This document shows positions 29,811 through 63,269 of a DNA stretch of 64,000 nucleotides, piece by piece. How positions within the stretch are numbered: the first letter of the stretch is position 1; every line of letters begins with the position of its first letter. The notes below the pieces were generated by a model. That model was given only the letters and a program-made list of their open reading frames with translations. It was not told where the DNA came from and did not search any database. This stretch comes from Macrostomum lignano (Eukaryota), in the NCBI GenBank assembly GCA_002269645.1, contig NIVC01000441.1:356406-420405 (forward strand). The letters are read 5' to 3'. The translations under genes and the position numbers were made by a program.

Positions 29811-29874
<64 letters not shown>

Positions 29875-30179: not shown

Positions 30180-30220
<41 letters not shown>

Positions 30221-30478
30221 CACAGACAGACAGACACACAGACAGACATACACACTGACAGACAGACAGACACAAAGGCAGACAGACACAAAGGCAGACA
30301 GACACAAAGGCAGACAGACAGACAGACAGGCAGACACACAGACAGACAGGCAGACGCACAGACAGACAGGCAGACAGGCAGACAGACAGACAGACAGACA
30401 CAGACAGACAGACGCACAGACACACAGACAGACACACAGACAGACAGACACACTGACAGACAGACAGACAGACAAACT

Positions 30479-30522
<44 letters not shown>

Positions 30523-30555
30523 CAGACAGACAGACGCACAGACACACAGACAGGC

Positions 30556-30604
<49 letters not shown>

Positions 30605-30711
30605 CAGACAGACAGACGCACAGACACACAGACAGACACACAGACAGACAGACACACTGACAGACAGACACACTGACAGACAGACACACTGACAGACAGA
30701 CAGACAGACAC

Positions 30712-30742
<31 letters not shown>

Positions 30743-30780
30743 CAGACAGACAGACGCACAGACACACAGACAGACACACT

Positions 30781-30816
<36 letters not shown>

Positions 30817-30867
30817 CAAAGACAGACAGACAGACAGACACACTGACAGACAGACAGACACAAAGGC

Positions 30868-30916
<49 letters not shown>

Positions 30917-30944
30917 CAAAGACAGACGCACTGACAGACAGACT
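29488..30944. repeat. ~1.45-kb (GACA)n microsatellite with variants
   Basis: Direct inspection. Abuts a minus-strand GTTAGT donor-like site at 30947. Confidence 0.97.
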
Positions 30945-31399
30945 AACATGAACAGGCGGCTGGAAAAGAGCAGGAGAGGCGCAAAGCCGGAGAGCCGGCC
31001 AATGCAGCCTCGGTGAGGCTCCAGTCCGCACAGCCTCAGCATCGGCTGTCGGCAGTAGCTAGGCAGAGTTTCTCATAGAAAAGCTTCAGTAAGTGAGTGT
31101 AGAAGAGCCGTCGGCTGCACTGTTCTTCTTGCTCCAGTCCGCAGCTTCCACGAGCAACACCGAGTTGATTAAAGTGACCGTTGGCAAACACCAACTCAGA
31201 ATTGTGTGCTCAACTCAATACAGCAGAAGCAAATTATTGTTTTGCGCGTGTGTTTGCTCAGCCACTTGACGATAACAGTCGCCTATGCAGTTTTCTCTCT
31301 GCTCTCTAAATAGTCGCGGCTAAGCTAAGAAAATCTTTGTGCGGAGGCTGGACAACTGTGCGAGCTCTGGAATTGCTCTGCATCAAAAGCTGTCTGTCT

Positions 31400-31900
31400 G
31401 TCCGCTTATTCTGAGCCGCGATGCCGGGCGAACCTCCACGGCGACAACTGCGGCGCCCACCTGTGCTGGAGATCGGCCGGCCGCCTTTTGTTAGCCTGGC
31501 CTGGCAGCCGGCGACGACTCGAACCCGCGACCACTTCCAGCTGATTGGTGCGCGATCATCGCGCGGACCTGCGCCGAAAGTTGAATGTACTTTTCAATCC
31601 GGGTCAATCGTAGCAGACGGATTTCGCCTCTCCGCGCGACCCCGCAGCCTCGGCTGCCGCCGGCGCGACAGCGGGGTTAATCGAACTTTTGTCTCCATGG
31701 CAACGGATCGGAGGCACAAGCCTAAAGAGTTGGAAAGGGCGGCGGACGATCAGCGTTCGCTGGCGCTAGACTGGCGGCTCCTGACTCTGGTGGGGCGCCG
31801 TCTCGGCCCGCCCGCCAACCGGCCGACCGAGGTGGCGGCCTTAGCAACAACGCCCGGTCGCCATGGCAACATTAAGCGCGGTCGGTCTGGTCTACGCTAG
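31400..31900. promoter_or_regulatory. CpG-rich putative promoter/enhancer with two RFX X-box motifs
   Basis: GTCTCCATGGCAAC (31691-31704) and GTCGCCATGGCAAC (31857-31870) fit the X-box consensus GTNNCC-N-RGYAAC. Half site CCTTAGCAAC near 31840; ATTGG box near 31545. No convincing ORF. Confidence 0.55.
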
Positions 31901-32084
31901 GCACGGGGCTCTCTGACCTGGCATTGTGCATATAAATATACATGTGTAAATACGAGTACATAGCTAACCATAGGGACCACTGTGTGACAGCTTTTTCCAA
32001 CTGTTGATTTCAAAATCCGCAATCGTTAAATTGATAAAAATTTCTGACATTTATCTGTTTATCAGTTTATTAAGCAATGCTAGC

Positions 32085-33556: not shown

Positions 33557-36500
33557 TCAATGCGATTTTGGCTCCCCGTCTTCGTCATAGTCGTCAAGGA
33601 ATCCCAGGTGCTCGGCTGTTGCCTCCTCGACTACGGCGGCCGCGGCACCGCGCGGTTGGCTCACCTGGATGGGTGAGTGGGCGAAAGTCAGGGTTATTCC
33701 CAGATCCTCAGTTGCTGGGCCACAGCCTCCCAGATCCTCAGTTGCTAGGCCAGCCTCCCAGATCCTCAGTTGCTGGGCCACAGCCTCCCAGATCCTCAGT
33801 TGCTGGGCCACAGCCTCCCAAATCCTCAGTTGCTGGGCCAGCCTCCCAGATCCTCAGTTGCTGGGCCACAGCCTTTCAGATCCTCAGTTGCTGGGCCACA
33901 GCCTTCCAGATCCTCAGTTGCTGGGCCACAGCCTCCCAGATCCTCAGTTGCTGGGCCACAGCCTCCCAGATCCTCAGTTGCTGGGCCACAGCCTCCCAGA
34001 TCCTCAGTTGCTGGGCCACAGCCTCCCAGATCCTCAGTTGCTGGGCCAGCCTCCCAGATCCTCAGTTGCTGGGCCAGCCTCTCAGATCCTCAGCTGCTGG
34101 GCCAGCCTCTCAGATCCTCAGCTGCTTACGCAACTCTCCCAAAATCAGCCACCTGGCCCCCGCTCACGTCGGGCACAGACAGCCGATAGTCCTCCTCGCT
34201 TCCAGGCAGAGACGGCGACCTCGGCAGTTCGTCTTCGTCCTCCTCCTCGTGCGGCGGGCGAGGCACGCTGAGCAGGAAACGCCTGTCCGGCGCCGGGTGG
34301 CTGCCGCGAATCCTGACGCCGCCGCTGCCGCTTTCGCTGGCCGCCGCCAATGCCGCGGTGTCCTGCAGCAGGTGGCCGCTGCTGAGCACCTTCTGCTGCC
34401 ACTTCTTCTGCCTGTTCAGCTCCACCCAGCGGCGCCGCTCCGCCTCCTGTGCATTGAGGAAGAGTGTGCTCAGACTGTGCTCAGACTGTGCTCAGAGTGT
34501 GCTCAGAGTGTGCCAGAGTGTCCTCAACTGTGCTCAGGGTGTGCTCAGAGTTGGTCATTGGGCGGAATGGATGGGATTTTAAGTGACTCGAGTTTAACTA
34601 TATTTGAGGATCTGAGGATATTAGACGACCAGAAATAATGAGATAATTAAGGAATCAGAATCTGGGTTGTGTGGGATCAGAAAGCAATCTCAAAGATGGA
34701 TTGTTAAAAGCGGGCGACATGGGGATTTGATGAAATATACAATCTCGAGATTAAACGCTGTAAAAAATGGCTACGAGCGTAGTTCTAATAGCTAACCTCT
34801 TCCTTCTGGTGCTGCACGAGGTCTTTCACGTTGCTAAGCAGTTCGTCAATTTTTGAGTCAGTTGAATCCTCGTCCTTAGCCGACAAGCAGAGGGCTCGGT
34901 TGAGCGGAAAGAATTCAAACCTTTCCTCTTTTAACTGAAAATTGTGGTTTTAACGAGATTTCCCTTGACCTTTACGATTTTTGGCGACATGAAATTACAA
35001 AACAGTAAGGCTTGAGACATTGATTTAAATGCACAAGCGTTTTCTGGGTGTGCAGGGGTGGCTGGCGGAGTGAGGGGTGTGGAGGGGTGGCTAGCGGAGT
35101 TGAGGGGTGTGGAGGGGTAGCTGGCGGAGTGAGGGGTGTGGAGGGGTAGCTGGCGGAGTGAGGGGTGTGGATGGGGTGTCTGGCGAAGTGAGGGGTGTGG
35201 ATGGGGTGGCTGGCGGAGTGAGGGGTGTGGATGGGGTGGCTGGCGGAGTGAGGGGTGTGGAGGGGTAGCTGGCGGAGTGAGGGGTGTGGAGGGGTGGCTG
35301 GCGGAGTGAGGGGTGTGGAGGGGTGGCTGGCGGAGTGAGGGGTGTGGATGGGGTGTCTGGCGGAGTGAGGGGTGTGGATGGGGTGGCTGGCGGAGTGAGG
35401 GGTGTGGATGGGTAGCTGGCGGAGTGAGGGGTGTGGAGGGGTAGCTGGCGGAGTGAGGGGTGTGGAGGGGTGGCTGGCGGAGTGAGGGGTTCAGACGGGG
35501 CCGAAATGAGAAGTACATGCTTACTGAGCTACAAAAAACTGAGCTACAAAGGCCCTACCATCTTGTGGACGTGCAAATCCAATGAGGTATAGTCATTAGT
35601 TGCCGTGTCCTCCAGGTGGATGAAGAAGAAAATATAGGCCCACATGTTGTGCTCAGTGCGCACGTGATGGTCGAAGCCCTGACCGTGGTGCTCGAAGTCA
35701 TAGTTGTTGCGCGAGCAGATGAAGCAGCAGTTGCGCATGTCGGTCTCGGCCAGCCACTTCTTGTCTCTGTGGGTGAAAGAATTGAAAGAATGGTAAGGAA
35801 AGAGTTAGGGGTGTGGAGGAGTGAGGGGTGTGGAGGAGTGAGGGGTGAAGAGGAGTGAGGGGTGTGGAGGAGTGAGGGGTGTGGAGGAGTGAGGGGTGTG
35901 GAGGAGTGAGGGGTGTGGAGGAGTGAGGGGTGTGGAGGAGTGAGGGGTGAAGAGGAGTGAGGGGTGAAGAGGAGTAAGGGGTGAAGAGGAGTGAGGGGTG
36001 AAGAGGAGTAAGGGGTGAAGAGGAGTGAGGGGTGAAGAGGAGTAAGGGGTGAAGAGGAGTGAGGGGTGAAGAGGAGTAAGGGGTGAAGAGGAGTGAGGGG
36101 TTGAAGGAGTGGGGTATTATCTCACCTGAGCTGACTAAAAGTATCCACAATGATGCCAAAGATAATGTTCAAGCCGATGGTGCTAATCAAGACAAAGAAT
36201 GTGATGCTGAACAGGGCCATCCAGACGTACTCGTCAAAGTTTCTGTGGCTGGATGGCGGCACAAGATTCTGAAAAGAATTTAGCAAGCAAAGTTTTACTG
36301 TTTTAACATCAAATTACGTTATTGGTATGTTTCAGTTTTTCAGTTTTGAGCTCGAACTTCAAAGTTTCAAGCTTGTTTCGAGCAGAGTTCGAGTGTCGAA
36401 CTCGGAGAGCCGCTCACCTCGAACAAGTCGCCAATCAACCCGAAGCGCAGGATGGTGACGAAGCACTGGTAGAGTGTGCCGCAGAACATCAGACTGTCGT

Positions 36501-39500
36501 CTGGACGGAAGGCGATTCGGAACTTAGCGAAGCCGATCACCGCGTACAGGTACATGATCGCGATGCCCAGCACCGAGACCCACACCAGCGACAGGCCTGC
36601 AGGGTTGAGCGGCCGGCTTATAAACTAATTCATAGATAATTTTGAAACTAATTGTGGCATTTTACTTATCATACGTATGTGCACTGTTAGCCTTGCATAG
36701 CTATCGGCTCTGTATGTGAGAGAGTGACATTCCGTGTTAGAGAGTGACAATCCATGTTAGAGAGTGACAATCCATGTCAGAGAGTGACATTCCATGTTAG
36801 AGAGTGACCTTTGATGTTAGAGAGTGACCTTTGATGTTAGAGAGTGACAATCCATGTTAGAGAGTGACATCCATGTTAGAGAGTGACCTTTGATGTTAGA
36901 GAGTGACCTTTGATGTTAGAGTGACCCTTTCATGTTAGAGAGTGACAATCCATGTCAGAGAGTGACATTCCATGTTAGAGAGTGACAATCCATGTTAGAG
37001 AGTGATATCCATGTTAGAGAGTGACCTTTGATGTTAGAGAGTGACATTCCATGTTAGAGAGTGACAATCCATGTCAGAGAGTGACATTCCATGTTAGAGT
37101 GACAATCCATGTTAGAGAGTGACAATCCATGTTAGAGAGTGACATCCATGTTAGAGAGTGACCTTTGATGTTAGAGAGTGACCCTTTCATGTTAGAGAGT
37201 GACATTCCATGTTAGAGAGTGACAATCCATGTCAGAGAGTGACATTCCATGTTAGAGAGTGACATTCCGTGTTAGAGAGTGACAATCCATGTTAGAGAGT
37301 GACATTCCGTGTTAGAGAGTGACAATCCATGTTAGAGAGTGACATCCATGTTAGAGAGTGACCTTTGATGTTAGAGAGTGACCCTTTCATGTTAGAGAGT
37401 GACATTCCATGTTAGAGAGTGACATTCCATGTTAGAGAGTGACATTCCGTGTTAGAGAGTGACAATCCATGTTAGAGAGTGACATTCCGTGTTAGAGAGT
37501 GACAATCCATGTTAGAGAGTGACATTCCGTGTTAGAGAGTGACATTCCGTGTTAGAGAGTGACATTCCGTGTTAGAGAGTGACATTCCGTGTTAGAGAGT
37601 GACCTTTGATGTTAGAGAGTGACAATCCATGTCAGAGAGTGACATTCCATGTTAGAGAGTGACAATCCATGTTAGAGAGTGACATTCCGTGTTAGAGAGT
37701 GACCTTTGATGTTAGAGACTGACAATCCATGTTAGAGAGTGACATTTCATGTGAAAGAGTGACCTTTCATGTTAGAGAGTGACATTTCATGTGAGAGAGT
37801 GACATTCCATGTTAGAGAGTGACATTTCATGTGAGAGAGTGACATTCCATGTTAGAGAGTGACATTTCATGTGAGAGAGTGACCTTTCATGTTAGAGGGA
37901 CATTCCATGTTAGAGAGTGAACTTTGATGTTAGAGAGTGACCCTTTCATGTTAGAGAGTGACCTTCCATGCTAGAGAGTGACATTCCATGTCAGAGAGTG
38001 AACCTTCTGTGTTAGAGAGTTATCTTCCATGCTAGAGAGTGACATTCAATGTTACACAGTGAACTGTTATGCTGGACACAGACCAAACGCAATGCCGACG
38101 CAACCAATGCTCCCCCAAAACGGCTCACCATTGGTGGTGACGGCCTGAATGACGCCCCTCAGCATCTGGTTGTTGTTGACAATGTTGAGCAGGTGGAAGG
38201 CAAAGAAATACGGACTGTAGAAGGTGCCCGCAAACGCGCAGCCGACAAACACGATGTAGTAAAAGGTGGCGATGGAGAACAGGCGCACGGACAGCTTGTC
38301 CTGACCGCCGGACTCGCGCACCTCGTTCTCCTCTTCCTGGTCCTTCTGCCGCAGCTGCCGGAGCCGCCAAGCCAGCCTGGCCAGGTCTGGCGGCCTCGGA
38401 TGATTGGCAACGAAGAAGGCCAGCAGGATGATGATGGACAGGGCGTCAAGGATGTAGGCGAAGGCCATCAGCCAGTCTGGCAGGCTGGGATAGTCCGCCT
38501 TCCACTGCCCGGTGGTGCTGCGGGAGAGAGAGATGATGCAATCACGTGACATGATACAGTAACATTATGAGAGATGATGCAACAGCACGATCACATGATG
38601 CAACAACATGATCACATGATGCAACAACATGATCACATGATGCAACAACACGATCACATGATGCAACAACACGATCACATGATGCAACAACACGATCACA
38701 TGATGCAACAACACGATCACATGATGCAGCAACACGATCACATGATGCAACAACACGATCACATGATGCAACAACACGATCACATGATGCAACAACATGA
38801 TCACATGATGCAACAGCACTACTCGGTGACTCACTTAAAGAAGGCGTCGGGCACTGGCGCGGACTCGTCCGCCGAGATGTCAAGCGACGGTGTGTTGGCG
38901 CCGCCTGGCGGAGCCTCCAGGCCGATGAGCATGATGAGGTTGATGATGACGGCCACCAGGGTGGCAGAGTGGTTCCAGATCAGCCACAGCCGGGTCAGGG
39001 CGATGGTCAGAGGGTTGGACAGCACCTTCTTCTGGTAGTGGATGTCGTTCAGTATGGCCTTGGTCCAGTCCATGAAGTCGCGGATCTTCGTGCTGGACGA
39101 ATTTCGGTCTACGTTCCACTTCAGCTTCTCTTTGACCTCCTCCCTCAGCACGTTCTGGGGTGCGGCGGGATTGGGAATGCTGAACAGTGATGCAGGAGTA
39201 CCTGATAGCTAATGCTGACTCCTAGATGCCCAATACCCGCTTCCCAATACCCGATACCCGATTCCCCAATACCCGATACCCGCTTCCCAATACTCGATAC
39301 CCGATTCCCCAATATCCGATACCCAATACCCGATACGCAATACCCAATACCCAATACCCGATACCCAATACCCGATACCCAATACCCGATACCCAATACC
39401 CGATACCCAATACCCGATACGCAATACCCAATACCCAATACCCGATACCCAATACCCGATACCCAATACCCGATACCCAATACCCGATACCCAATACCCG

Positions 39501-42500
39501 ATACCCAATACCCGATACCCGATACCCGATACCCGATACCCGATACCCAATACCCGATACCCAATACCCGATACCCAATACCCGATACCCAATACCCGAT
39601 ACCCAATACCCGATACCCAATACCCGATACCCAATACCCGATACCCAATACCCGATACCCAATACCCGATACCCGATACCCAATACCCGATACCCAGTAC
39701 CAGATACTCAATATCCGATGCCCAGTACCCTCTTAATACCCGATTCCCCCTGGCGTTGCCCAATACCAAATATTCAAATACACCACTAAGCTCATATTAA
39801 GAAGAGCGCAGCTAAGCCTGGTGCAGCCCTCACTAACCTTATTCCGAACTCTAAAGTGAATCTTCTGCAGGTTAGAGTCTTTCACAATCTCAATAGTCAT
39901 TGAATTCTTCTTGAAAAACTTGAACGCTTTCATCTGCGAGTCGGAAATTCTGAGCTCTGCGGGCGAGGCGTTTGAAATGGAGATCATCGTTAAAACATGC
40001 TTACTTTGTGAGACAAAATGCAGTGTTTTGATTTGTGAGGAAAATCATTCTGAATGCCAAAGCCTTGCTGTCATTTGCCGCTCGAATTGCGCGAATTTGG
40101 CGCTGTTAAAACAATGTAAAAAAATCCGGATGCCAATCCGACGCAACGAACCGTCACCAAGCGCTTATTTATGTTTTAGGCTTGTTTAATTAATGAAATA
40201 ATTAGCCAAACAATGCAAATATTAACAAACCAATTCTGTATAAAACTTTGTGCAGACTTGATTTGATATACCGTCCCAGTTAGTCGCTTTTGGAATATGT
40301 TATTGGGTATCGGGTATTGGGTATCGGGTATCGGGTATTGGGTATCGGGTATCGGGTATTGGGGAATCGGGTATTTGGTATCGGGTATTGGGTATTGGGT
40401 ATCGGGTATCGGGTATTGGGTATCGGGTATTGGGTATCGGGTATTGGGTATCGGGTATCGGGTATTGGGTATCGGGTATCGGGTATTGGGGAATCGGGTA
40501 TTTGGTATCGGGTATTGGGTATTGGGGAATCGGGTATTTGGTATCGGGTATTGGGTATCGGGTATTGGGTATCGGGTATTGGGTATCGGGTATCGGGTAT
40601 TGGGGAATCGGGTATTTGGTATCGGGTATTGGGTATCGGGTATTGGGTATCGGGTATTGGGTATCGGGTATCGGGTATCGGGTATTGGGGAATCGGGTAT
40701 TTGGTATCGGGTATTGGGTATCGGGTATTGGGTATCGGGTATTGGGTATCGGGTATCAGGTATCGGGTATTGGGTATCGGGTATTGGGTATCGGGTATTG
40801 GGTATCGGGTATTGGGTATCGGGTATTGGGTATTGGGTATCGGGTATCGGGTATTGGGTATCGGGTATTGGGTATCGGGTATTGGGTATCGGGTATTGGG
40901 TATCGGGTATTGGGTATCGGGTATTGGGTATCGGGTATTGGGTATTGAGAATTGGTTATTGGGTATTAGGTACTGGGAATCGGGTAATGGGTATCGTGTA
41001 TTGAGAATTGGGTAATGGGTCTTTGGGTATTAGGAATCGGGTATTGAGAATTGGGTATTAGGTATTTGGTTATTGGATATTGGGAATCGGGCACTGGGGA
41101 TCAGTTCAGATATCGGAACAGTCTGATCATAAACAAATTAATATCGGTATGATAAGATATGCCAATAATTCCATTCCAATTGCAGAGAAGGAAGGCGGTA
41201 TTGGAGGAGTGCTTGCAAAATTAGGTCGGGTCGAATCCCAATAGCCAATTTAGAAGGCTTGGACAGAAATACTCTACTTAGCAAAATTATTACCTAGTAG
41301 TATTCAGCGCAACAAAAATTTAAGGCTAATGCCATTATGGTAAGGATTATCCACACAACAAAGCTTAAGTATTCCTTAACACGTATCAAACTCAGTTTCA
41401 ATAAGTAGTTGGTGTCCTGGGAAGGATGTTCGTCCCGAACCGGGGACAACCGGCTGAGTCCGGAGTCCTCTTGCCCTGGGTGCCTCTTCTCCCGACCCCT
41501 TGGCCTGGCCCCCAATAATGAGCTGGATAGGCGATGCCCTTGGGCTGGTAGCAATAGAGGTGTGCATTCTCCGCCTAGAGTCTCCCCCTCGGATACAAGC
41601 CTTCCAGACTCACTCCAAAATAGAGCTGGGTAGTGAAAAGCCTTGAGGCTCGAGACCTTCAGGGGACCACGACCCTGTTTTAGGATCGCTCTTGGTAATA
41701 AGCTGCCCAGACTCGCTCCAATAGCTTAAGCCATTTCCAAGGTTTAGGAGTAGTTCCTCACTTGGACCGCTTTCAGTAGTATCCCAAACTTTTCGTTTTC
41801 AAATTTCTCTGCGCACACCCAAAAGACTTGCTGGCTGGGGGGATGGTCTGGGTGGATTCGGTCCTAGCACCGTCCCTGATTCCACTGTTGGTTTGGCGGT
41901 GTCTTGTACCATAGGCTTGAAGTCCCTCGCCCTTTCCCTAGCTTTAAGCTGGGGCCCAACTAAATTGGTGACTGGGTATCTCGGGTACACAGTCTTATCT
42001 GTGCCCTTGGCAGTGCCCTCTGCGGCAGAGCCCCTCCCAGGGCTGATCCGCGGGTAGCAAAGCTTCCCACCCCCGTTTAACAACAAGTAGTTTAAACACG
42101 CATTCTTAGTAGCATGAAAGCGCATAAAATGGTTAATTTTTTGTTTATTTCAAAAATATATAGCCCGTAATATTTTCATTTAACTACTACTGACAATAAG
42201 TTTTGTAAGTAGTTTGTAAGCGTGTTTTTTCTGTCAACTCATTATTACAGGTTAAAAACTGCTGCGCCTTTCAAAGTTCTGGGGAGAAGGGGGTGGAGGC
42301 AGCTTCAACATACCTCGTCCGTAGGGATCTGAGTCTGTAAGTTGAAGTTATATGAGCAGTTGTCTTATCTTGGCTAGCAATAAATTAATTAAAGTTGCTA
42401 AAATACCTACTGGCTACAGAATCATATTTATTAATACATGCACAGAGATGATCACCTTTCTTTCCCATCGCGGGGTCGATGTCGTACAGGCGGGCGATGA

Positions 42501-45500
42501 TGGTGTAAAATGAGAAGCCAACATCGAATATGGCGTCCTTCAGCTCCTTGTTCTCGTCCTTCTTCTGCGGATTGAGTGCCAGCGATGCTATGCGGTAAAC
42601 TGTTCGTTAATTTTTTAGGCCGCTGATCCAACCCACACTCGACTAAGCCGCTAATCCAATTCAACCAACACTCTACTAAGCCGCTAATCCAGCCCACACT
42701 CTACTAAGCCGCTAATCCAATCCAACCCACACTCTACTAAGCTGCTAATCCAACCCACACTATACTAAGCCGCTAATCCAATTCAACACACACTACTAAG
42801 CCACTAATCCAATCCACCCTCTACTAAGCTGCTAATCCAATCCACCCTCTACTAAGCCGCTAATCCAATCCACCCTCTACTAAGCCGCTAATCCAATCCA
42901 CACTCTACTAAGCCGCTAATCCAATCCACACTCTACTAAGCCGCTAATCCAATTCAACCAACACTCTACTAAGCCGCTAATCCAATCCAATCCACACTCT
43001 ACTAAGCTGCTAATCCAACCCACACTATACTAAGCCGCTAATCCAATTCAACACACACTACTAAGCCGCTAATCCAATTCAACACACATTCTAGTAAGCC
43101 GCTAATCCAACCCATCATTCGCTAAGCCGCCAATCCAACCCACCCTCTCCAAGCCCAGCCAGCGCTCACCAGCAGGCGCCGCAGCCAGCCCTCCTTGCCG
43201 GAACTGTCCCTCTGGCAGTATTCGTAGCACTCGGTCATGACTCGGTACAGCGCCTCCTTGTCCAGGGTGTCCTTGACCTCCCGGCCAATCACCGCCGCCT
43301 CGGGCGAGTTCTCCTCAATGAGGGACACAACCAGATTGGCGATGGCCTGCCGCAGGCTGGCAATCTGGTCCAGCTCGCAATTCTCAAAATCGGAAGTGCG
43401 CAGTATAAAATTAATGTAATCTATGATTTTGTTGTCGTAGACTGCGGCCCGATTCTCTTGGTTGCCCTGCGGTAGCAAAGTGTGAAAATTAATATTAAAC
43501 AATCTGCGGCTATTGAGCGCTTTTTTCTACTTTTAGTAGTGAAGCGCCTGGCTAACAGAGAAAATGTTCCTACAAATATTTGCAAGACAGGTTTTAATGT
43601 TAAAATAGGCTATTGAGACAGGACTATTATCTAATTGGATTCCCCGAAACCCGGAATTGAAATCAGATTTTAAAGTTAATGAGAAACTGTTTAATGCTCT
43701 ACAATGAGTAGGCGGCACGGTTATTGCAACTGATAAAACTAAGATTAACATCAAGATTGATTTCAATATCGTGAGCGAGCTAGATAAATAAATTTTCAAA
43801 TATCATCATAAGAATCTATGTGAGCCACTCAGCTCATTTGTGTGTAAGCTACTGTCAGTAGAAAGTTAAATGGAAGAATTTTATCAGATAATTTATTTTA
43901 GGGCAAGACATTCGCTCCCCCCTCAAAATCTTTAACCCTGGGCACAGATTCCATATGCTCGTATAGAATCAGCGCCCCACCCCGCCGTCTAATTTTTATT
44001 GCCTTCCCCGGTTGTGTTCCAGCCTAAAGTTGCCAGACATGTACATTCTTAGTAGCGCTGGCTAATGTACATTGAGGCTGCACCAATAGCGAATTGTTTA
44101 CGTCTGCAAGTCACTCCAAAACAGGCTTGGCTTTTCTTTTATTTTCATAAAATAGCGCACGCATTCTTCATTGCTACTGAACTGAAAGTTGCAGAGACGG
44201 CTATTCAAATCAAATATGCCTACATTTAAGTGGCCCTTCTAGTTACTATAGTATCTGCGCTCGCTCAATACACGACGTACATCATGTACATGTATGAAAA
44301 AGGCCAAAATAAGTTTTAACATCTCGCGCACAAACCTATCCAGAGAAACTCTAAACAGACACGCAATTTGAAACTAGCTTTCAAAACTGTTAAAACCTCA
44401 TCTTACCGCACAGAATTCATTCACAGTGGTGAACAGCTGCACCAGCAACTCGATAGTTTCGCTGTTGATGTTGGAGTAGGCCACGTTGATGAATTGCGAC
44501 ACCTCGGCCACGAGGTTGAACGACTTGATATTGTCCGGCTGTTCTCGCAGGTAGTTCTGCAGGCCCTTGTGTTGTCCGTCACAGATCCTGGCCAGGACCT
44601 TCAGCACCAGGCCCACGTAGCCATCATCCTTCATGGAGATCTTCTCAGCCTCCAGGTGGTGCGCACTTGACTGGTCTCCGTCCTGCTGGGTTTCAAAGTG
44701 TATATGACAGTGTGTGTCACAGTGTACATGACAGTGTGTGTCACAGTGTACATAACAGTTTGTGTCACAGTGTACATAACAGTTTGTGTCACAGTGTACA
44801 TGACAGTGTGTGTCACAGTGTACATGACAGTGTGTGTCACAGTGTACATGACAACATGACAGTGTGTGTCACAGTGTACATGACAGTGTACATGACACAT
44901 GACAGTGTGTGTCACAGTGTACATGACAGTGTGTGTCACAGTGTACATGACAGTGTGTGTCACAGTGTACATGACAGTGTGTGTCATAGTGTACATGAAA
45001 GTGTGTGTCACAGTGTACATGACAGTGTGTCACAGTGTACATGACAGTGTGTCACAGTGTACATGACATGAGTAGATACCATGTGTCAGGAAGTCAGAGA
45101 AATTTACACACCATCCTGTCAGTTCCGTTGCTGCCTTTCATCAGGCCGTCAGCGGCGTCCTTCCCACCTTTGATGCCGTTAGCAAAGGCGACTTGCCGAC
45201 CAGCAGCTGACGTGCTGCCGCCGTTGCTGCCGCCGTTGCTGCCGCCGTTGCTGCCGCTGGCGACGCCTCCAACGCCGGACTTTTTCTTGGTGATGGACGC
45301 CGACTGCATCTGGGTGAGGCTGACCCGGCGCTGCAGGCGTTTAATTTTAAAATAAAAAAATTCAATCATACTACTGATTAGTAGGCAAGTGGAGAATATC
45401 TCCGTTTACATTTAATATCTGTTTGGTAACTAAGTGTACATTAAATTAGCAAACCTTGGTGGTGCGTACTCGTAAACTGGAGTTTCAAGCTAATTGTTAG

Positions 45501-48500
45501 ACAAAAAACATGCAATTATAATTTATTGAGTACATATTTGAGTACATTCACTGATCGACTTTGTTTTAATCAGTATAAAATAAATAAGCAAGTTTTAACT
45601 CGAAAGCGCTCGAGTCCCTCTGGAAAGTTTCTTAGGACAGCTGAAGCAGAAGGCATCACACTCCAAATCGTGCAATTTCGCTGGAAGCAGCAGGTGTATG
45701 AGTGCTTGCCTGTATACAGGCTCAGAAACGTCCTTCTGAACCAAAATCGGAAGGATATCCGAGCCCTTGTCATGACCCTCACCGGCCATGGCAACCTCGC
45801 CAGGCACTGCTTCCTCCGAGGCGACCTCGAAAGTGAACTTTTGCCCTTTTGGCGAGTACGACAATGAAGATGCTCAGCACTTTGTCTGTCACTGCCCTTT
45901 CTTTACCAGAGACCGGCTATGCTACCTCGGCCGAACCCGTTCATTGACGAGGTCTGCCAGCCCGACAGCATCCCACGGCTCATCCAGTTCCTTCGGGCAA
46001 CAAGACGAGCCACTTTCTTCCCCACGGAAGATCAAGCTGCAGGACGGACCGGCGGACGGCTAGCGGAATGGGCTGGTTAGAGGACAATGTCCCCGAAGGC
46101 GCTGCTCCAGGGTTTCCCGCAACCAATCCTTTAATAGGTGCCCCAAAGAAGCCAAATAATTTAACTGACTCCTGCTTTGCAGTCTTTCACCCTGACTTAT
46201 ACCCCCGAAAGCAAAGATTCGAGCACTGGGTAACAGGAGCTATAGACCTTGGAAATATGCAGATGCTGTCTCCCTACATCACGCATGAGTGCGATGTGTT
46301 GCTGGTGCATTTCTAAATATTTATAGTAACTAAGAGGACTTGAGGTTACAGGAAATACGATCATCAATGTCAGTAACACAAACTATATGAGCAAATCTAT
46401 GCTGCAACTAATGAGCAAATTAAATTTATAAATTGTGCAACAAAAAGCTAATTTGCACAGAAAAGCTACTGTAAGTAGTTTACCATACCATCAGTTTTCC
46501 ATTGTTCTGCAAACACGGATTATTGTAGTTAAACAACGGATGCTTGGACAGCCAAGATAAATAAAGGAAAAGTAAAAAACACTTATGGTGAAGTACTTAG
46601 AGTATAAATGTCATTTATCAATTGTAACAAAATAAATATGAGGGATGTGCAGGTGACCCCCAACACCATTATTACATACGTATTGACGAAGTGAAGGTGG
46701 ATATGCAGCTTTTTTTATTATTTTCACTTCAAGAAAAAGTGCATTCTCTCCAAAATTAGGATAAATTAATTTCAGTTTTACCATTGCTTGCTGCGTGGTG
46801 GGCGAAGTTTTTTTGTTGAACTGATTAGTCATTTTTCATGGAGCTTGGAATATATTTAACATAAAGATTCTACTTTCCTAGACATTACTCTAAGTAGGAT
46901 ATAAGTTCATGCAGGAAAAAATTATTTTATTATTGATAACTTAACTTAATTGATAATAAACTTAATAAAACTCACAGTTAAATCACTGTTGGCCTGCTCA
47001 ATCTTCATCTCGACGTGATACTGCTGGATTTGCTGCAATTCGGATTTGAATAATTATCTGTACGATACTTTTCCATTTATAGTTTAATCTGATAACTAGC
47101 TCATTAGTTCATGAACTCACTCATGAACATACTCATGAACTCACTCATGAACAGACTCATGAATTCACTCATGAACTCAGTCATGAACTTATGAACTCAC
47201 TTATGAACTCACACATGAACTCATGAACTCACTCATGAACTCATGAACTCACTCATAAACTTATGAACTCACTCATGAACTCATGAACTCACTCATGAAC
47301 TCATGAACTCACTCATAAACTTATGAACTCACTTACGAACTCACACATGAACTCACTCATGAACTTATGAACTCACTCATGAACTTATGAACTCACTCAT
47401 GAACTGATGAACTCACTCATGAACTTATGAACTCACTCATGAACTTATGAACTCACTCATGAACTTATGAACTCACTCATGAACTTATGAACTCACTCAT
47501 GAACTTATGAACTCACTCATGAACTTATGAACTCACTCATGAACTTATGAACTCACGCATGAACTCACTCATGAACTTATGAACTCACTCATGAACTCAT
47601 GAACTCACTCACCTGAAGCGCTTTCACCCCGAGAGTCATGGTGGCCTTAAGATCGTCCGCCTGGCTCCTGGCGTCCATCTGCCGCGCCTTCTGCTGCGAG
47701 ATGAGCAGCCGCTTCTCCTTGATGTTTGCGGTGGACACCTGCAGCCGGTTGCGCACAGCAAAGAAGAACACTTCTTCTTTCGTGTTCAAGAAGTACTTGA
47801 GCATGCTCTGTTGGACTTTCTCGTTGGCATTAAATAGCATGATGCCAAGGAGTGAAAGAACCTCCTTAGCAACTAAGCCGCTCGTGGAAGCCAGGTGTGG
47901 CAGCGCGTGCTTCATCAAGTCGAATGAGTTCAGCGTATTCTGGATTTCCGCAATGTTCTTCAGACCTCTGAAGATTAAGGGAGTGAGGGGTGAGTTGTAG
48001 TTACACGTAGCAACCAATCAACACAAATTACAACCAACACACCGCAACCAATCAACACAAATTACAACCAACACACCGCAACCAACACACTGCAACCAAC
48101 CAACACACTGCAACCAACCAACACACCGCAACCAACACACTGCAACCAACCAACACACCGCAACCAACACACTGCAACCAACCAACACACTGCAACCAAC
48201 CAACACACCGCAACCAACACACCGCAACCAACACACTGCAACCAACACACCGCAACCAACACACCGCAACCAACACACCGCAACCAATCAACACAAATTA
48301 CAACCAACACACTGCAACCAACCAACACACCGCAACCAACACACCGCAACCAACACACTGCAACCAACCAACACACTGCAACCAACCAACACACCGCAAC
48401 CAACACACCGCAACCAACACACTGCAACCAACACACCGCAACCAACACACCGCAACCAACACACCGCAACCAATCAACACAAATTACAACCAACACACTG

Positions 48501-51500
48501 CAACCAACCAACACACCGCAACCAACACACCGCAACCAACACACTGCAACCAACCAACACACTGCAACCAACCAACACACCGCAACCAACACACCGCAAC
48601 CAACACACTGCAACCAACACACCGCAACCAACACACCGCAACCAACACACCGCAACCAATCAACACAAATTACAACCAACACACTGCAACCAACACACTG
48701 CAACCAACACACTGCAACCAACCAACACACTGCAACCAACCAACACACCGCAACCAACACACCGCAACCAACACACTGCAACCAACCAACACACCGCAAC
48801 CAACACACCGCAACCAACAAACCGCAACCAATCAACACAAATTACAACCAACACACTGCAACCAACCAACACACCGCAACCAACACACTGCAATCAACCA
48901 ACACACTGCAACCAACCAACACACCGCAACCAACACACCGCAACCAACACACTGCAACCAACACACTGCAACCAACACACTGCAACCAACACACTGCAAC
49001 CAACACACTGCAACCAACACACTGCAACCAACCAACACACTGCAACCAACCAACACACCGCAACCAACACACCGCAACCAACACACCGCAACCAACACAC
49101 CGCAACCAATCAACACAAATTACAACCAACACACTGCAACCAACACACTGCAACCAACACACTGCAACCAACCAACACACTGCAACCAACCAACACACCG
49201 CAACCAACACACCGCAACCAACACACTGCAACCAACCAACACACCGCAACCAACACACCGCAACCAACAAACCGCAACCAATCAACACAAATTACAACCA
49301 ACACACTGCAACCAACCAACACACCGCAACCAACACACTGCAATCAACCAACACACTGCAACCAACCAACACACCGCAACCAACACACCGCAACCAACAC
49401 ACTGCAACCAACACACTGCAACCAACACACTGCAACCAACACACTGCAACCAACACACTGCAACCAACACACTGCAACCAACCAACACACTGCAACCAAC
49501 CAACACACCGCAACCAACACACCGCAACCAACACACTGCAACCAACACACTGCAACCAACACACTGCAACCAACACACTGCAACCAACACACTGCAACCA
49601 ACCAACACACTGCAACCAATCCCTGCAATCAACAATCACATGTAAAGAAAGCCGCCTCTAACCAAAGCAAGAAGCATGCATGCATCAGTGTTAAGATGCC
49701 GAGACTGACCGTTTCACCCGAAACTCGGACATCCGCACCTCCCAGTCCTCGGGCAGTTTGCGCTCCTCATTGTGAATGAATGCGCGCAAAATCTGCAGGA
49801 TTCGAATGGCCAGCCGTTCTGTGTCGCCCCGACCCCCGGCGCCGGGGTCAGCGGCTGCAGCAGCTGCGTGAGACGCGCTAGCAGTGCTGGAGACGGCGGT
49901 GATTCTGGAGGGGGGAGAGGAGAATGCGGTGCTCCATGGAGTAACTGTGAGTGAGTTGGTGTCAGCTTTCAGACAGGTTTTTTCCCTGTCTATAAGCGAG
50001 TTGGTGACAGATTTCTGTCAGGTATTTCACCTGTCTATAAGCGAGTTGGTGACAGATTTCTGTCAGGTGTTTTCCCTGTCTATAAGCGAGTTGGTGACAG
50101 ATTTCTGTCAGGTGTTTTCCCTGTCTATAAGCGAGTTGGTGACAGATTTCTGTCAGGTGTTTTCCCTGTCTATAAGCGAGTTGGTGACAGATTTCTGTCA
50201 GGTGTTTTCCCTGTCTATAAGCGAGTTGGTGACAGATTTCTGTCAGGTGTTTCACTTGTCTATAAGCGAGTTGGTGACAGATTTCTGTCAGGTGTTTCAC
50301 CTGTCTATTATAAGCCAGTTGGTGACAGCTTTCTGTCAGGTGTTTCACCTGTCTATAAGCGAGTTGTTGACAGCTTTCTGTCAGGTGTTTCACCTGTCTA
50401 TAAGCGAGTTGTTGACAGCTTTCTGTCAGGTGTTTCAACAGGCTATTTGAATTTTTTGCAGAAATTTCAGGCAACTAATGCATTGTAATATTGCACACGC
50501 AACCGTGAATTCACTCTTAAATAATCCTTGTCACCTGCAATGTAGCAGAAACTAGATAGATACCTACCTACCGACAGACCATTTTTACTAATACTAAAAC
50601 TGACGCGATGTTTGTCTGTTTGTTTGTTGCAACTTTTCTCCTAGACTACTGGCAACTCAGCGTCGAAACTTATATGGGAAAATTGCAAATTTTCTGTAAG
50701 TGGCTATAGGCTATTTTAATTTTCTATTTTCACATTTTTAAATCTCTAAAAAGGCAGAAAACAGCTTTTAACCTTCTTTGGCCCTTCTGTGGCCACTGAC
50801 TCTCTAGTGGAGGGGTTGCAGGTTGCAGCCTGTTTGTAAAAAAGCCACCCCAACCTCTGCCCGCGGGTCGCTGTGTATTGGGGGGATGGGTGCACGTATT
50901 CCACATTCAAGGCAAATGTTGGGGTGCAATTAAAAGAAAAGAGAGAGAGGGTAGAAGAGAGACAATATATAAGTGAGTAGATATGAAATATGAGACAGGA
51001 GAGAAGAGGGTGAGATGAGGGGAGAAATAAGAGAGAAAAGAGGAGACAGGAGAGGGTACAGACGAAAGACAATGGAGAAGAGATAAATAAGGGAGGAGAG
51101 ATGAAAGGAGAGAGAGGAGAGAGAAGAGAGTAATGATGAGAGCGCAGAGAGGAGAGAAGAGACACGAGAGTCTGAGTCTGGACAATGGCAGCCAGTTTTT
51201 GCAAACAGGGAAATCAATGAATGGACTATGCTATGGTATTTGAAAGATTTTGTAAAGAATTTATTTGGAGACAATTTGAAAGATGGGGTTCAAGGCATGG
51301 AGTTTTAGCTGATGGATTTCAGGGAATGGAATTCCGCGGATGGGAGTTCTCCTTTCTCCTCCAAAGGAGGAGTTCCACTCGTTTAGTATATGGATGTAAA
51401 AATGTCGTAGAATTTCCATAAAACAGCACGCAGCCGTGTCCGTCATTTTCAGTCACTATTTTATGAGGCAAGTTTGAAACAAAAAACAACGAAAACTAAA

Positions 51501-54500
51501 AGTAGAGAAAATGTTTTTGGGGGGGGGGGCTGGGCAAGTCAGAAGTCGAACTTGAGCAGCTCCTGCAGGTAGTTCTCGTCGCATTGGTCATTTTCGAAGC
51601 TGAACAGCGAATTGGCGGCCCGGCTGGCGCTCAGCATTGTCTGCTTCTTTGATTGCGTGCCCAGCACGGAGGTGTCCCTGATAGACTTCAACAGGCTTCG
51701 GTGGACGGCCTTCTCGATCTGGACGGACAAATCCGCCTCCTTCGGCTGCGGCGACCGGAGCCCGATGGTGGACCCGGGCGGAGTTGAGCCGCTGTCTTCG
51801 ATAATGGTGCCGGCCGTGATTGTGGTGCAGTCGTCTCCCTCGTTCTCGTCGATGTCGACAATGATGGTCGTCTCGGCGGCTGAGGACGAACCGCGCGCGC
51901 CGACTTCATCGATGCTGTCGGTGTCCGAGCCGATGGAGGTGTCGTCGCTGATATCGTCCGGGCAGTCGTCCAGGACGGTCGGGAGGTCGTGCTCTTCGGC
52001 GTACTCTCGCTCGAGACCGGGCGCTTGGCCAACCTCGGTCAAGTCGAAGGCGCGCGCGCTGATGATGGAGCCGAGCATCTGCTTGGCACCGCGGCGCCCC
52101 GGCCGGATGCACAGGCTGGCGCCGCACAGCAGCTCGGTGACGGCCGTCTCAGGCGCGCTGACCAGGATGTTGCCGATTGTACGTATCGAAGCCGAGGATG
52201 AAGACGACTCGTCAGAGGGCTCGGCAGCGTTTTGCTGAGCTGGGAGACTCGCATCCGACATCTCAACTCCTGCTTTGCGAATGCTGTCTTCAATTCCGCT
52301 CTTGGCTAATTTGCATTATTTCTATTCAAAGCATTCCTTGGAATCCTCTTTGATTCGGACAATCCGTTAAACATTGGGCCAGCCAGCCATAGACACTTGG
52401 CTTTTGAGCACGAAATTATTGCTATACCGTGCTCATGCTATTTATAATGGCTGCTAGTGAACATTTCAAACTTTAACTTGCCAGGGGCGGACCCAGGATT
52501 TTATCGAGGGGGGGGGGGGCAAGCCTCACGTCTGGTCAGGCCAGAGCTGCAATTAGGGTACCATGATACCAATACAGCATGATACCAATACATCTGAGGA
52601 TTTTTTTGGCAGAGCTGAGGGGAGGGGGGCCATGGCCCTCTTGGCCCCCCTCCTCGGTCCGCCCCTGTTGAAACTTGCATGCAATTGAAAAAATTGTTGG
52701 TAGGATTGCTGCGAACGTTGATTGATTAGAAGGTAGATTATTGAGAAGGATGGGAAGGAGGCAGGTGGGGGAGGAGGCAGGTGGGGGAGGAGGCAGGTGG
52801 GGGAGGAGGCAGGTGGGGGAGGAGGCAGGTGGGGGAGGAGGCAGGTGGGGAGGAGGCAGGTGGGGGAGGAGGCAGGTGGGGGAGGAGGCAGTTTCTGAAT
52901 CAAGCTGCACAGCGAACTGCCAGAAGCCTCACCGCAGCCCGTTGACCAGCAGGCCGGCCAGCCTGTAGCGGCCCTCCGGTTTGCGACTGCCGGCGCTGAT
53001 GAAGCACCGCACGTGATCCTGGAACTCTTCGTCCAGCGGCAGGGACTCTTCGCCGCCGATGACCGTGTACTCTGCGACAGGCAGCGGCGGATCGGGGTTG
53101 TTGAAATGAAGCCAATGATTGCATATTGAAGTGTTACACGCAATGACCAATCATAGAAGACAGTCAGAGCTAGCGTGTGTGATTTCTTTGAGATGGTTTC
53201 ATAAATTTATCCACTTAAATTCAGGAAAAATACCACTGCAGACTGTCCTACATGCAAAGTTGAAGACGTAAAACCCAAAACTGCCTACAGTAAAAGCCCG
53301 TTTGATGCTGTGCATTCTGCAGAGGATCCGCTAAGAGTACACAATGTACTTTGGATTGTTTCCACTTCAGCAAATCGTATTGGAAAGACAATAATTCAAC
53401 AAACTAATACATCAACTTCCAATGAAACACATATCGGCTTCATGGCAGACTACTAAAGTCGTCCTTGCTTTACATTTATATTGGACACACTGAAGGTGAG
53501 ATATTGACAAAAAACTGCAACCCTTCCAATCTTGCCAATGCCAATGATCCTGATACAACCTCCTCATCTGGTCCGGGAACTCCTCACCTCGATCCGAGCT
53601 ATACTTCAACTGTGCCCTGACAGTGTTCTGGCCGCCCCACAGCAGACTCATGTTCACTGCCAGCGTTTTCAGCTTAGAGTTGAGAATGATCTCCTGCTCA
53701 TAGTACTCCTTGTTGCCCTGAGTTGTGTTTGGAAAGTAAAGTAAAGTTAAAGTTAGTTTTGATTTTTCTTAGAAATGTTGTTTAGAAATTCGAAACCATG
53801 CAGAAGTCACTACTCGTACTTACCGATTTCATTTGAGACACTGTGTCCTGCAGTTTGGTGCCCTTGCCGATATTCTCCACTACTGGCTCCATGATCTGTG
53901 ACAAAAGTATCGAACAAAAGGCAGATATGTAAACCCCGTTTGAAGTGCTTAGCTAGCTTTATGCTGTCAGATAAAAAAACTAGACTATGATCCTGTAGAA
54001 CAGGGAACCTTGGTAACCAGGAGCCCGCAACTTTAAATACCTAGCCACATTTTTCTCAAATACATCTACACTAATAATAATAATAATAGATCTCATAAGC
54101 AGTAAGAAAAATTAGCAGTTCTTCCAGATCCCATCTGCTAACAAACCATTCTAAGAAACATTTAAATAGAACCCTGCAAATTCAACTTTGATTCTTAGAA
54201 ATATTCTTCTTTTTCTATTAGAGGAAGTCGAAGAATGATTTATAATAAGTTTATATTAACAACTTGTACATAATTGCTTTACATAACAGTTTCCCTACTT
54301 TCAGTTCAGTAGCAATAAAGAATTTGTAAGCTATTTTAAGAAAAGAAAAGCCAGCCAGTTTTAGAGTGACTTGCGATCGTAAACAGCTTGCTATTGGTGC
54401 AGCCTCAATGTACATTAGCCAGCGCTACTAAGAATGTACATGGCAAGCATTTTAGGCTGGAATACACCGCGGAAGGCAATAAAAATAATTGGGCGGCAGG

Positions 54501-57500
54501 GCGGGCACGGATCCTATATATATCGTAGAATCTGTGGGCGTGGGGTAGAGATTTTATGCGGAAAGACCATGGAGGAAAGAATAGAATGGAGTGCTAATCT
54601 GAGCCAGTTATTTTTATCTCGCTCGATCTTAACTTTTAACATCCCTTTCCCCCCGTTCTTTCCTATTGGCTCGTGACTGCCATAGACAAAGTATTTTTCG
54701 TCTCGTTTTCGTTTTCGTTCCCCTCTGAAAGGAGTATGAGCTCGCATCAAAATATGCTTTCAGCCAATAGGAAGGAACGGGGGGAAAGGGATGTTAAAAG
54801 CGAAAATCGAGCTAGATAAAAATAACTGGCTCAGATTAGCACTCCATTCTATTCTTTCCTCCATGGGAAAGACGCGGTCTGAGGGGTAAGAGGATCAATA
54901 AGCGTCCTGAAAATGAATTAGAATTCTTCTACCTCAACTTTCTACTAACAGTAGTATAAACGCAACCGTGCTGAATGGCCCATCGGCCATCACCTACAGT
55001 AACTCGTATTGTAGTATTTGAGATATTAATTAGCAAAAGTAGAAGCAAAAGTATACAAACGCTCACAGTGGGCCGATGCGAGCTCTTGCGCACCAGGGCG
55101 CTCAAACAGGCCACCATCTGAGTGAGAATGCGCGGTTCCACCACGATGGCAGCCAGCTCGCTGCACAGCCCGATCGCCGACAAGGTCAGCCGGTCGAACA
55201 TATCCCGCTCCGACTGGGTGTCCTTGTCCTCCTCGGTCTGGTAGAACTTGTTGGCGAATGCCTGCAGAAACGGCAGCACCGCGTCGAACACGTAGTGAAG
55301 TGACGCGTGACCGCGGAAATCGTCTTCGCGCATCCTCACCACGGCGCTGCGAGAGGCGGTCAGGGGCTAGTAACTCATCGGTTAAGACTAAAAAATCCTA
55401 ACACCTTTCGCCCTCAATCTTGCTATGCTTTCCTTGACTATTACGTTATCTTAAATTAGAACTCCTTAATACATCAGCCTAACGATTTCTGAACATGCAG
55501 ACTTTGACAAGTTATTTAGAATGATCCTGAAGACAACCAAAAACTTCATACTAATGAGCAACATGTTAATTCCCTTTGTAGCATCAATAAAAGGCAGTCA
55601 GAATTATCTAGACAAGATCAGAGTCTTTGATTTTTCGCGGAGACGACATTAAGCAAAATCGTACTTTTCCAAGTTAAGTTTCAGCGGCTGGGTCTCGTCC
55701 TCGGCAACCAGTGTAGAGCACAGTGGGCAAGCGTCGTGCAGTCGCAGGCTGAAATTCAATTAAACAATATAGAATTAGCAATCAAAATTGAACGCACGGA
55801 AGTTTCCCAGAAGTTACGAGCGTAAAACCTACATGACTGATACAATGTAGAACGATGTCTATCTCTATTTTGCTTCTATCGCGAACATCAAATAACACTT
55901 ACACAATTGCTTGTTTTGCAATTCGATATTTACATGGAAATCGATATTCTATATTTAGTTACTATAAGTAAACGCCTCATACATGTATGTACAATGATTC
56001 ATCTCACATTTTAGGGAAAGGCCGCATCGACATGAAGTACACGGTGTCCCGAGCTGCGTCATTTCTTATCCAACGGGTGAGGCCGTCGAATTCGAGCGTC
56101 AAGTGTCTCACGTACTCCCAGACGAGTCTGTTGATTTGAAGTGATGTTAAATCATAAAAAGAGTTAATGACTGACGCGAATACTTGCGCCGGCACAAGCC
56201 GCTACAGCGTTTAAGCTCAAAACCTGCGAGCTTTGGCCTCCAACAGTGAGAGAGTTGATCCACAACTCCGAATAATGAATTTTGTTTAAACAGAATCGCG
56301 ATAACATTGTTTTAAAACGATTAAGCAGTTGACAGGTGAGAAAGAGCATCCATCCGGCAGTGAGAAATATATTGTGCCGAGTAAGTGAATTTTACGAAGC
56401 ATTACCAAAATGTACGACTCAGGCAGACAACACTTTTGTTACAAAATGTAGCACCGATTCAAAAGAATCGGAGAAAAACATTTTGATGCTTTTATCTATC
56501 CTGCGATTTTTCGAGCGAAATGGTTTGCTAAAAACCACAACATGATTTTTTCAGCACATGAACTGAATATAAATAAACTTTAAAATGTTAACAATTAGTT
56601 TGATTTGATGCGGCAAAACTATTGATTAACTTACTTTTGATATCTGAAAGTTTGGGCGTTTAAGCGGTGTTTTAAAGTGAGAAATTGGATATATTTAGTC
56701 AGCATAACCACCACCATAACCAGCACCAAGTACGGGCTAATTAACTAAAAACTGGTAATAAATATATGATTAAAATCTGGAACATTTTCAAATTGTCAAT
56801 TGCTAAAGCTAATAAACAATACATGGGTTTTAATTGTCATGCGAGCGTCTCTAGCATTTTATGTCAATCATCTTTTGCATGGACTGCTAGTCTGGTCTAA
56901 AAGATAAAAAATTCAGCAATTTGATTGGAAGCTACATCACTTCAGCCATTTATTCTATTCGGGACGAGGAAGAGGTCATGGGAGGTACAGAAATCGTGAC
57001 GATCTTCGCGAAACTTCGGATGCAGTAAGAAATAATAAATAAATACTTTTTTCTTCTGTAGCTCTTCTTTCAATATGCTTTAAGCTTGCAATATTCCGCA
57101 GCTATACTTTGTTATAAAAATTTACTACTGTATTTCTTCAACTTTCCGGAGAGTAGTACCTTTCGAACTACTCGTATAAATATAAGGTACCTGCTGTGCC
57201 AATCCTCACTGAATCTTAATTCAGGAACTTAATAATTGATAAATACCCAAATAATTAATCAATTACAGTTAGTCGAAATACCAACCGACCAAATCTCCAT
57301 CTGCCTTTATTTCCTTACAAAATAACGGTAGATACCTCGTATATGTACAGTATATATGTACATAATTTATCAATACTCTTTGCTAATTGGGCAAAGTGGG
57401 TTAGAAAAGATCTGTACGATGGAATGTACATCACATCGGAAAGAAATCTCTTCCTAACCCACTTCACCACCAGTTCTGGGGAAGGAAAAAAGAATGTACA

Positions 57501-63155: not shown

Positions 63156-63269
63156 CTGGGCGTGAGTTAATACAGGGAACGAGCTTCTTATAATTTTGAA
63201 AGATTAAAAAACAGCTTTGATAGAAGCGTCTGCCAGTAACAAGTTAGCTATAGAAGTTTTTATCTCCTG

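Follow-up and report, generated by a model that had tools for sequence, protein, structure and literature searches.

Can a gene for a channel of the IP3R/RyR type lose the glycine-rich selectivity filter and still be kept as a working gene? This question is raised by a stretch of 64,000 nucleotides from the flatworm Macrostomum lignano (contig NIVC01000441.1, positions 356,406 to 420,405; hereafter the window), the minus strand of which carries most of such a gene, with a pore that reads LRFGLIGD. In IP3R and RyR pores, GGGxGD is regarded as the hallmark filter, and single glycine changes in it leave the pore dead and thereby cause human disease. The reading favored here, at a probability of about 0.7, is that the window holds most of an intact and maintained gene, that its product is one subunit of an intracellular cation channel, tetrameric and of the IP3R/RyR superfamily, that this gene belongs to a bilaterian clade with a filter free of the canonical glycines, and that permeation through its pore is probably altered.

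The pore exon and its filter

The codons at 36427..36450 on the minus strand translate exactly as L-R-F-G-L-I-G-D, covering the end of the pore helix and the non-canonical filter, and the residues LFE continue from there to the exon end at 36418. The exon (36418..36596, minus strand) runs in its coding from S5 through a short loop on the luminal side to the pore helix and filter; its translation includes GLSLVWVSV, and it is bordered by a ccctgcag acceptor and a gtgagc donor. The original prediction, made from the sequence letters, had placed an LRFGLIGD pore within an open frame, and this clean exon does translate in that way. The S6 helix and CFIC/H/H zinc finger, which it had described as conserved, are located in the next two exons of the same strand. 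The first (36126..36268), defined by translation and the splice model, encodes the luminal turn that follows the filter as well as S6, in which the gate (F...I/V, DTF) is conserved, and the second (35559..35766) encodes the post-S6 linker and the zinc finger CFIC...H...H, which was aligned to CFICGLERDKF...EEHIKSEH of ITPR2. In alignment A1, the S6 residues N223, G227, I228, I229, D231, F233, and L236-R237, which comprise the gate residues and the DTF..LR motif, are invariant, and both the CxxC pair and the two His of the zinc finger are present in the window gene. Three further minus-strand exons were assigned: 38835..39154 for the pre-transmembrane region and S1 (located by tblastn, alignment, and the gene model), 38129..38517 for the transmembrane helices S2-S4 and the S4-S5 region, and 34797..34934 for a C-terminal part homologous to the IP3R ERNLDWFPRMRAMSL segment (the latter two by alignment and the gene model).

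In solved structures, the canonical filters are GLRSGGGVGD in rat IP3R1 (3jav) and GVRAGGGIGD in RyR1 (8vjj), in agreement with the GGGVGD and GGGIGD that the original prediction had ascribed to the two families. A GGGxG(D/E) filter is missing from the window gene, where GLIGDLFE sits in a loop of equal length. Two conserved anchors, GL in the pore helix (CxxLxxCxVTxLxxGL) and D(TF) in S6, are spaced 48 residues apart in the window gene, rat IP3R1, Salpingoeca rosetta, Lentomonas, and most members of the GLIGD clade, that is, the group of the window gene described below; RyR1 has 47, and a group with Capsaspora, P0018, and P0068 has 46. Since this spacing is unchanged from that of rat IP3R1, the filter was rewritten in place, without a net insertion or deletion. 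The earlier claim that the motif is one residue shorter thus does not hold, and the local alignment behind it (LRFG-LIGD versus LRSGGGVGD) would force a shift of the conserved pore helix. A clean deletion of five filter residues (GL-----IGD) was likewise considered and was rejected on the same counts.

Within the loop, the register of the filter is ambiguous among three options. First, an ungapped alignment pairs the glycine triplet with D-L-F. Second, HMMER and MAFFT place GLIG--DLFE against GLRSGGGVGD with a two-residue gap that is compensated downstream, so that Glu falls on D2551 and Phe on G2550. Third, a motif-based alignment pairs IGD with VGD and moves five residues downstream. Whichever register applies, the filter has lost the glycine triplet, gained an aromatic or bulky residue, and kept two acidic positions. 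The luminal loop ahead of the pore helix is short, as had been predicted: the stretch that separates the conserved NG ahead of S5 from the Cys of the pore helix measures 37 residues in the window gene, compared with 89 in IP3R1 and 41 in RyR1. In an AlphaFold2 (AF2) monomer, a turn of three residues is predicted after the pore helix, then a helix of one turn (FENL), from which a loop leads on to a long S6. The best Foldseek matches of this model are IP3R3, IP3R1, and RyR, with low TM-scores of around 0.4, and the predicted monomer thus seems to carry the IP3R/RyR channel fold.

Gene model and selective constraint

The in-window part of the channel gene extends over 34126..63182 on the minus strand, as delimited by tblastn colinearity with an M. 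lignano paralogue (P0185) and a full-length homologue from the nemertean Tubulanus polymorphus (P0056), and corresponds approximately to residue 774 through the C-terminus of the latter, a protein of 2674 aa. With these two proteins as guides, and with the junctions picked by frame and similarity, 24 exons were modelled from 61387 to 34126 (5199 nt, 1732 aa). Their introns are all GT-AG, internal stops are absent, and the model ends with a TAA stop at 34126-34128; the open frames noted in the original prediction thus extend to all 24 exons, which join in frame. At least four more minus-strand exons lie upstream of the model, at approximately 63182-62892, 62553-62392, 61891-61772, and 61579-61469. 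In Pfam searches, the modelled protein matches RIH_assoc (PF08454, E=3e-19, 69 bits versus a cut-off of 28.5) and Ion_trans. Together with the six-transmembrane channel, the pore helix, the DTF..LR motif of S6, and the zinc finger, the RIH_assoc domain argues, at the sequence level, for membership in the IP3R/RyR superfamily.

The last modelled exon (34126..34446, minus strand) encodes a poorly conserved tail up to the stop codon, and an additional 3′ exon may follow it. P0185 has a weak match of 15 aa at 33610-33566, past the modelled stop. The C-terminal part of another public M. lignano protein, A0A1I8FAF2 (P0045), matches three minus-strand segments in 30950-31916 with 83-100% identity, 2-3 kb past the same stop; these are either further 3′ exons or a sign that the public model also takes in a downstream gene. 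In the M. lignano paralogue Mlig033347 (locus L001 on NIVC01000260.1, 70% identical), the S6 exon, the zinc-finger exon, and the exon that follows are contiguous and intronless (41312-41680 of that locus), whereas two introns separate them in the window gene (36268..34797), so that an intron loss or gain has occurred between the two copies.

Could the odd filter be an artifact in an otherwise canonical IP3R, the true pore exon of which was missed because it is an alternative exon or was mis-assembled? A six-frame scan of the 64 kb revealed no peptide of the GGGxG[DE] type in a plausible setting, tblastn found no second pore or S6 exon in the same interval, and other genomes, independent of this one, as well as contigs that resemble transcripts, contain this filter too; this explanation is the least credible of those considered here. 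Hardly more probable is a decaying duplicate under relaxed selection, or pseudogene, in a genome rich in duplicates. M. lignano does have several copies, and the public models of this gene (P0001, P0040, and P0045) carry frame shifts, that of P0001 at the pore itself. Several exons of the window gene are 98-100% identical to P0045, which places the sequence in M. lignano or a very close relative. The pore of P0001 reads RFGFDWRLVR, in which DWRLVR is another reading frame of the window codons at 36418-36450; P0001 therefore mistranslates the filter. This shift fits the indel errors of an older assembly, which are its likely cause, while a real frameshift in another copy is also possible. Against decay stand the 24 intact in-frame exons with canonical splice sites, the conservation of the filter across phyla, and the ratio of nonsynonymous to synonymous substitution (dN/dS). 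Over 1558 codons compared with L001, dN/dS is 0.13 (pN 0.174, pS 0.655), a value that is approximate because dS, at around 1.5, is near saturation; for the S5-pore-S6 region, the ratio is 0.22. On these comparisons, the window gene is clearly under strong purifying constraint. As for expression, two relatives were found on Logan contigs, P0047 (663 aa on 2154 bp) and P0002 (555 aa on 3252 bp), which are probably spliced transcripts because they leave little or no room for introns.

Relatives and family assignment

Relatives of the filter were collected by a word-indexed search and by an exhaustive HMMER search of 1.84 billion representatives, which gave 5147 matches at E<=1e-3 and 399 at E<=1e-30. 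The pattern R[YF]G[LV][ILMV]G[DA], followed by two variable residues and an acidic one, is common to all the closest relatives (26 retrieved sequences); the filter Asp is present in 24 of the 26 motifs listed, and the position three residues on is acidic in 25. This GLIGD clade includes the Macrostomum paralogues, T. polymorphus (its 2674-aa member being labelled "ITPR2-like"), Octopus bimaculoides, Candidula, Lymnaea, Biomphalaria, Patella vulgata, and Capitella teleta, as well as P0009, a metagenomic or transcriptomic sequence with a pore nearly identical to that of the window gene. The search for GLIGD-type pores across Metazoa that had been proposed to check the prediction thus found them in flatworm, nemertean, mollusc, and annelid sequences. 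A sister group with HHG[LF]V(E/D)xxY in place of the filter is found in Patella, Sinanodonta, oysters, Mya, Elysia, Paralvinella, Capitella, the orthonectid Intoshia, and Macrostomum itself (P0029), and the hemichordate Saccoglossus has RYGLLESFHE (ITPR1-like P0057/P0186). The HHG group and Saccoglossus share with the GLIGD clade the overall architecture, the loss of the glycine triplet, and an aromatic residue at the matching loop position, but do not consistently keep the GD pair and the acidic position after it. Among approximately 40 clade members that were looked up or that bear names, none is from a vertebrate. With this distribution, the altered pore is no defect but a trait that an ancient invertebrate gene lineage has conserved.

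A neighbor-joining (NJ) tree was built from 140 sequences over 228 well-occupied columns of the S5-to-zinc-finger region, with 100 bootstrap replicates and with PDB-verified rat IP3R1 and RyR1 as anchors. The GLIGD clade has a bootstrap value of 94, the HHG clade one of 85, and the whole bilaterian clade without the triplet (GLIGD, HHG, and Saccoglossus) one of 89. Its nearest outgroups are Capsaspora owczarzaki CAOG_04510, with GLENGLASVG, and several uncultured sequences; next come the choanoflagellates Salpingoeca and Hartaetosiga, in which GL[LM]xGGGLGE is retained. Rat IP3R1 stands far from the window clade, beside fungal and protist sequences with GLRxGGG[IV]GD, a placement that in an NJ tree is indicative only. 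The original prediction of a non-canonical paralogue lineage is borne out by the intact gene with its low dN/dS, by the recurrence of the filter across phyla, and by the support for the GLIGD clade.

Is this lineage of the IP3R type, or is it a divergent branch of the RyRs? The short S5-P luminal loop is RyR-like, and the channel-domain fold, the acidic residues after the filter, and the zinc finger are also common to the RyRs (RyR1 8vjj, RyR2). However, the RyRs have GGGIGD, SPRY and RyR repeats, and approximately 5000 aa, whereas full-length members of the window clade have 2.5-2.7 kaa, about half that length, and are less similar to RyRs than to IP3Rs. In Pfam searches, the full-length members (Tubulanus P0056, Saccoglossus P0186, and P0048) have the IP3R-type set Ins145_P3_rec, MIR, RIH, RIH_assoc, and Ion_trans, of which Ins145_P3_rec/MIR and RIH are also encoded by upstream exons of the M. 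lignano paralogue locus L001; neither the window model nor the full-length relatives, with their 2473-2674 aa, have a SPRY domain or RyR repeat. With the C-terminal domain, ITPR2 scores 135 bits (E 1e-38) and RyR2 112 bits (E 1e-31), and the best 150 representatives outscore both of these, the values for the solved vertebrate IP3Rs and RyRs. The N-terminal region of the Tubulanus protein is closer to IP3Rs than to RyRs, and the ARM3 region of the window gene matches IP3Rs only. Although a reported grouping of related proteins with RyR, noted below, would favor it, an origin within the RyR lineage is thus very improbable, and the comparisons point instead to a bilaterian clade of proteins with IP3R architecture that is separate from both canonical IP3Rs and RyRs.

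In the literature, schistosome homologues of IP3R and RyR have been described with a conserved GGGXGD (Prole and Taylor, 2011), and the window lineage was not covered there. A full-text search for a GLIGD filter in an IP3R found no paper, and searches on IP3R-B, the selectivity filter, and lophotrochozoans gave no description of this pore. A paper on a scallop "RyR-like" protein was rejected as a precedent, as it concerns an ordinary RyR.

Alzayady et al. reportedly defined in 2015 a family named IP3R-B, which is IP3R-like, distinct from IP3R-A, present in unicellular holozoans and invertebrates, and lost by vertebrates, and which they are said to have grouped with RyR. By this definition, the bilaterian clade without the triplet is most likely the IP3R-B lineage that vertebrates have lost. 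Both are IP3R-like and non-A, and the nearest non-bilaterian relatives of the window clade are Capsaspora CAOG_04510 and the choanoflagellate proteins; the choanoflagellate members, however, keep GGGLGE while the bilaterian members do not, and support for a joint clade is weak. The window gene very probably joins a lineage that has already been named but has barely been studied, as the original prediction had allowed in suggesting that such a channel might be known from other invertebrates.

Conduction, ligand, and surrounding sequence

With canonical IP3Rs (rat IP3R1 3jav, human IP3R3 6dqj), the window gene and its relatives share the architecture, RIH_assoc, the six-transmembrane channel, the pore-helix pattern, the S6 motif, the CxxC..H..H zinc finger, the C-terminal "FFP.NRA" segment, the 48-residue loop, and an equivalent of E1946. 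The differences lie in the filter, in the luminal loop, and in E1882. This last residue belongs to the cytosolic Ca2+ site, which falls in two minus-strand exons of the RIH_assoc/ARM3 region (44685..44407 and 43466..43170), assigned by the Pfam RIH_assoc match and by alignment to 6dqj. Of the two Ca2+-site glutamates of human IP3R3, E1946 is retained (in NEFC), whereas E1882 (in CENHN) is replaced by Asp in CDGQH, encoded within the RICDGQH codons at 44600-44640. The motif CDGQ[HN]..LQNYLR is common to Macrostomum, Tubulanus, Octopus, and Saccoglossus, and is thus a second signature of the clade.

Because the parts that gate the channel are conserved, IP3R/RyR-like gating would be retained in a subunit of a tetrameric intracellular channel, presumably in the endoplasmic reticulum (ER). 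Cations would pass through a luminal mouth of a different build, in which a ring of acidic residues is joined by an aromatic one at the place of a canonical glycine. As this mouth would replace the glycine-lined loop, conductance and selectivity are probably unlike those of canonical IP3Rs, and the altered permeation or gating that the original prediction proposed is a reasonable inference. Ligand binding can be judged from the relatives that have an N-terminus, in which the IP3-contact residues were scored, the same region of the window gene being off-window. These relatives retain R265, R506, K508, R511, and K569 and, for the most part, R568, while K replaces R504; lost are T266, T267, G268, R269, and Y567, or five of the 12 basic and polar positions. 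Binding of a phosphorylated ligand by the relatives is possible, while canonical IP3 binding is doubtful.

Do such channels conduct at all? A pore-dead subunit could be kept for scaffolding, ligand buffering, or modulation, e.g., through co-assembly with canonical IP3Rs or ER tethering. In the study of Alzayady et al., the Capsaspora protein CO.IP3R-B reportedly failed to act as a release channel gated by IP3, which may be counted in favor of this possibility. In the canonical filter, single substitutions of Gly by Ser, Ala, or Arg abolish IP3R function (PMC7939385), and here all three glycines are lost and bulky Leu and Phe are present in the loop. Nevertheless, the parts of use only to a pore that opens and conducts rank among the best conserved of the protein: S6 with its gate residues and DTF..LR (invariant in alignment A1), the pore helix, and the two acidic filter positions. 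The S5-pore-S6 region is itself constrained, and a scaffold would need none of these parts. A non-conducting subunit is therefore unlikely, albeit the most serious of the alternatives to a conducting channel with an altered pore.

Several points weigh against that favored reading. First, a single glycine substitution in the GGGxG of mammalian IP3Rs is enough to give a dead pore, so that conduction by a filter without the triplet is not guaranteed (PMC7939385). Second, Capsaspora IP3R-B is reported, in a secondary source, not to bind IP3 (PMC9113742). Third, the 5′ end of the gene, with the beta-trefoil and the IP3-binding region, lies past position 64000 and thus off-window. Fourth, no transcript-supported M. 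lignano protein identical to this copy was found, the homologue search giving only a 77%-identical fragment. Fifth, the phylogeny was obtained with the simple NJ method from 228 columns and was rooted arbitrarily, and bootstrap support falls to 5 of 100 when the Capsaspora group is added to the bilaterian clade and to 42 of 100 when the choanoflagellates are added. In addition, the near-saturated dS makes the measure of constraint approximate, and the AF2 model is of a monomer, with a mean pLDDT of 69.9, and is uninformative on the pore radius.

On a bolder interpretation, put forward tentatively and with less confidence than the favored reading, the lineage would form a third class of giant ER channel beside IP3R and RyR, lost by vertebrates, with a filter that lacks the glycine triplet, a novel conductance or selectivity, and maybe a ligand other than IP3. 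If true, this class would span flatworms, nemerteans, molluscs, annelids, and hemichordates, with the basic residues of the binding pocket partly retained in the relatives. A whole clade without the triplet, in which the gate, the pore helix, and the acidic positions are kept under purifying selection, amounts to a natural experiment on how cations are selected and passed by these pores. M. lignano is a laboratory flatworm in which RNA interference and transgenesis are established, and these tools would let the physiological role of the lineage be tested directly. Labels assigned automatically, such as "ITPR1/2/3-like" for mollusc, nemertean, and hemichordate proteins, mask a distinct family.

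Two other genes were recognized in the window from exon-like open reading frames (ORFs), both on the plus strand and hence opposite to the channel gene. One ORF at 13996-14526 matches the UAA nucleotide-sugar transporter family (PF08449, E=4.5e-20) and belongs to a separate gene downstream of the channel gene; two ORFs at 25168-25473 and 27637-28092 match the pyrimidine 5′-nucleotidase UMPH-1 (PF05822, E=6e-15 and 6.5e-25) and represent another. The GC content ranges from 29 to 57% along the window, and minisatellites are numerous. Arrays 0.3-1.6 kb long, with a period of 14-34 bp, lie in nearly every intron and in the flanks between 7177 and 63543, amounting to 47 rows of Tandem Repeats Finder output at a score of at least 200, in addition to a 1.4-kb (CAGA)n tract. 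Examples are found at 29487-30943, 35802-36106, 36714-38062, 39243-39695, 40301-41102, and 48031-49619, and many of the arrays yield long spurious ORFs in several frames.

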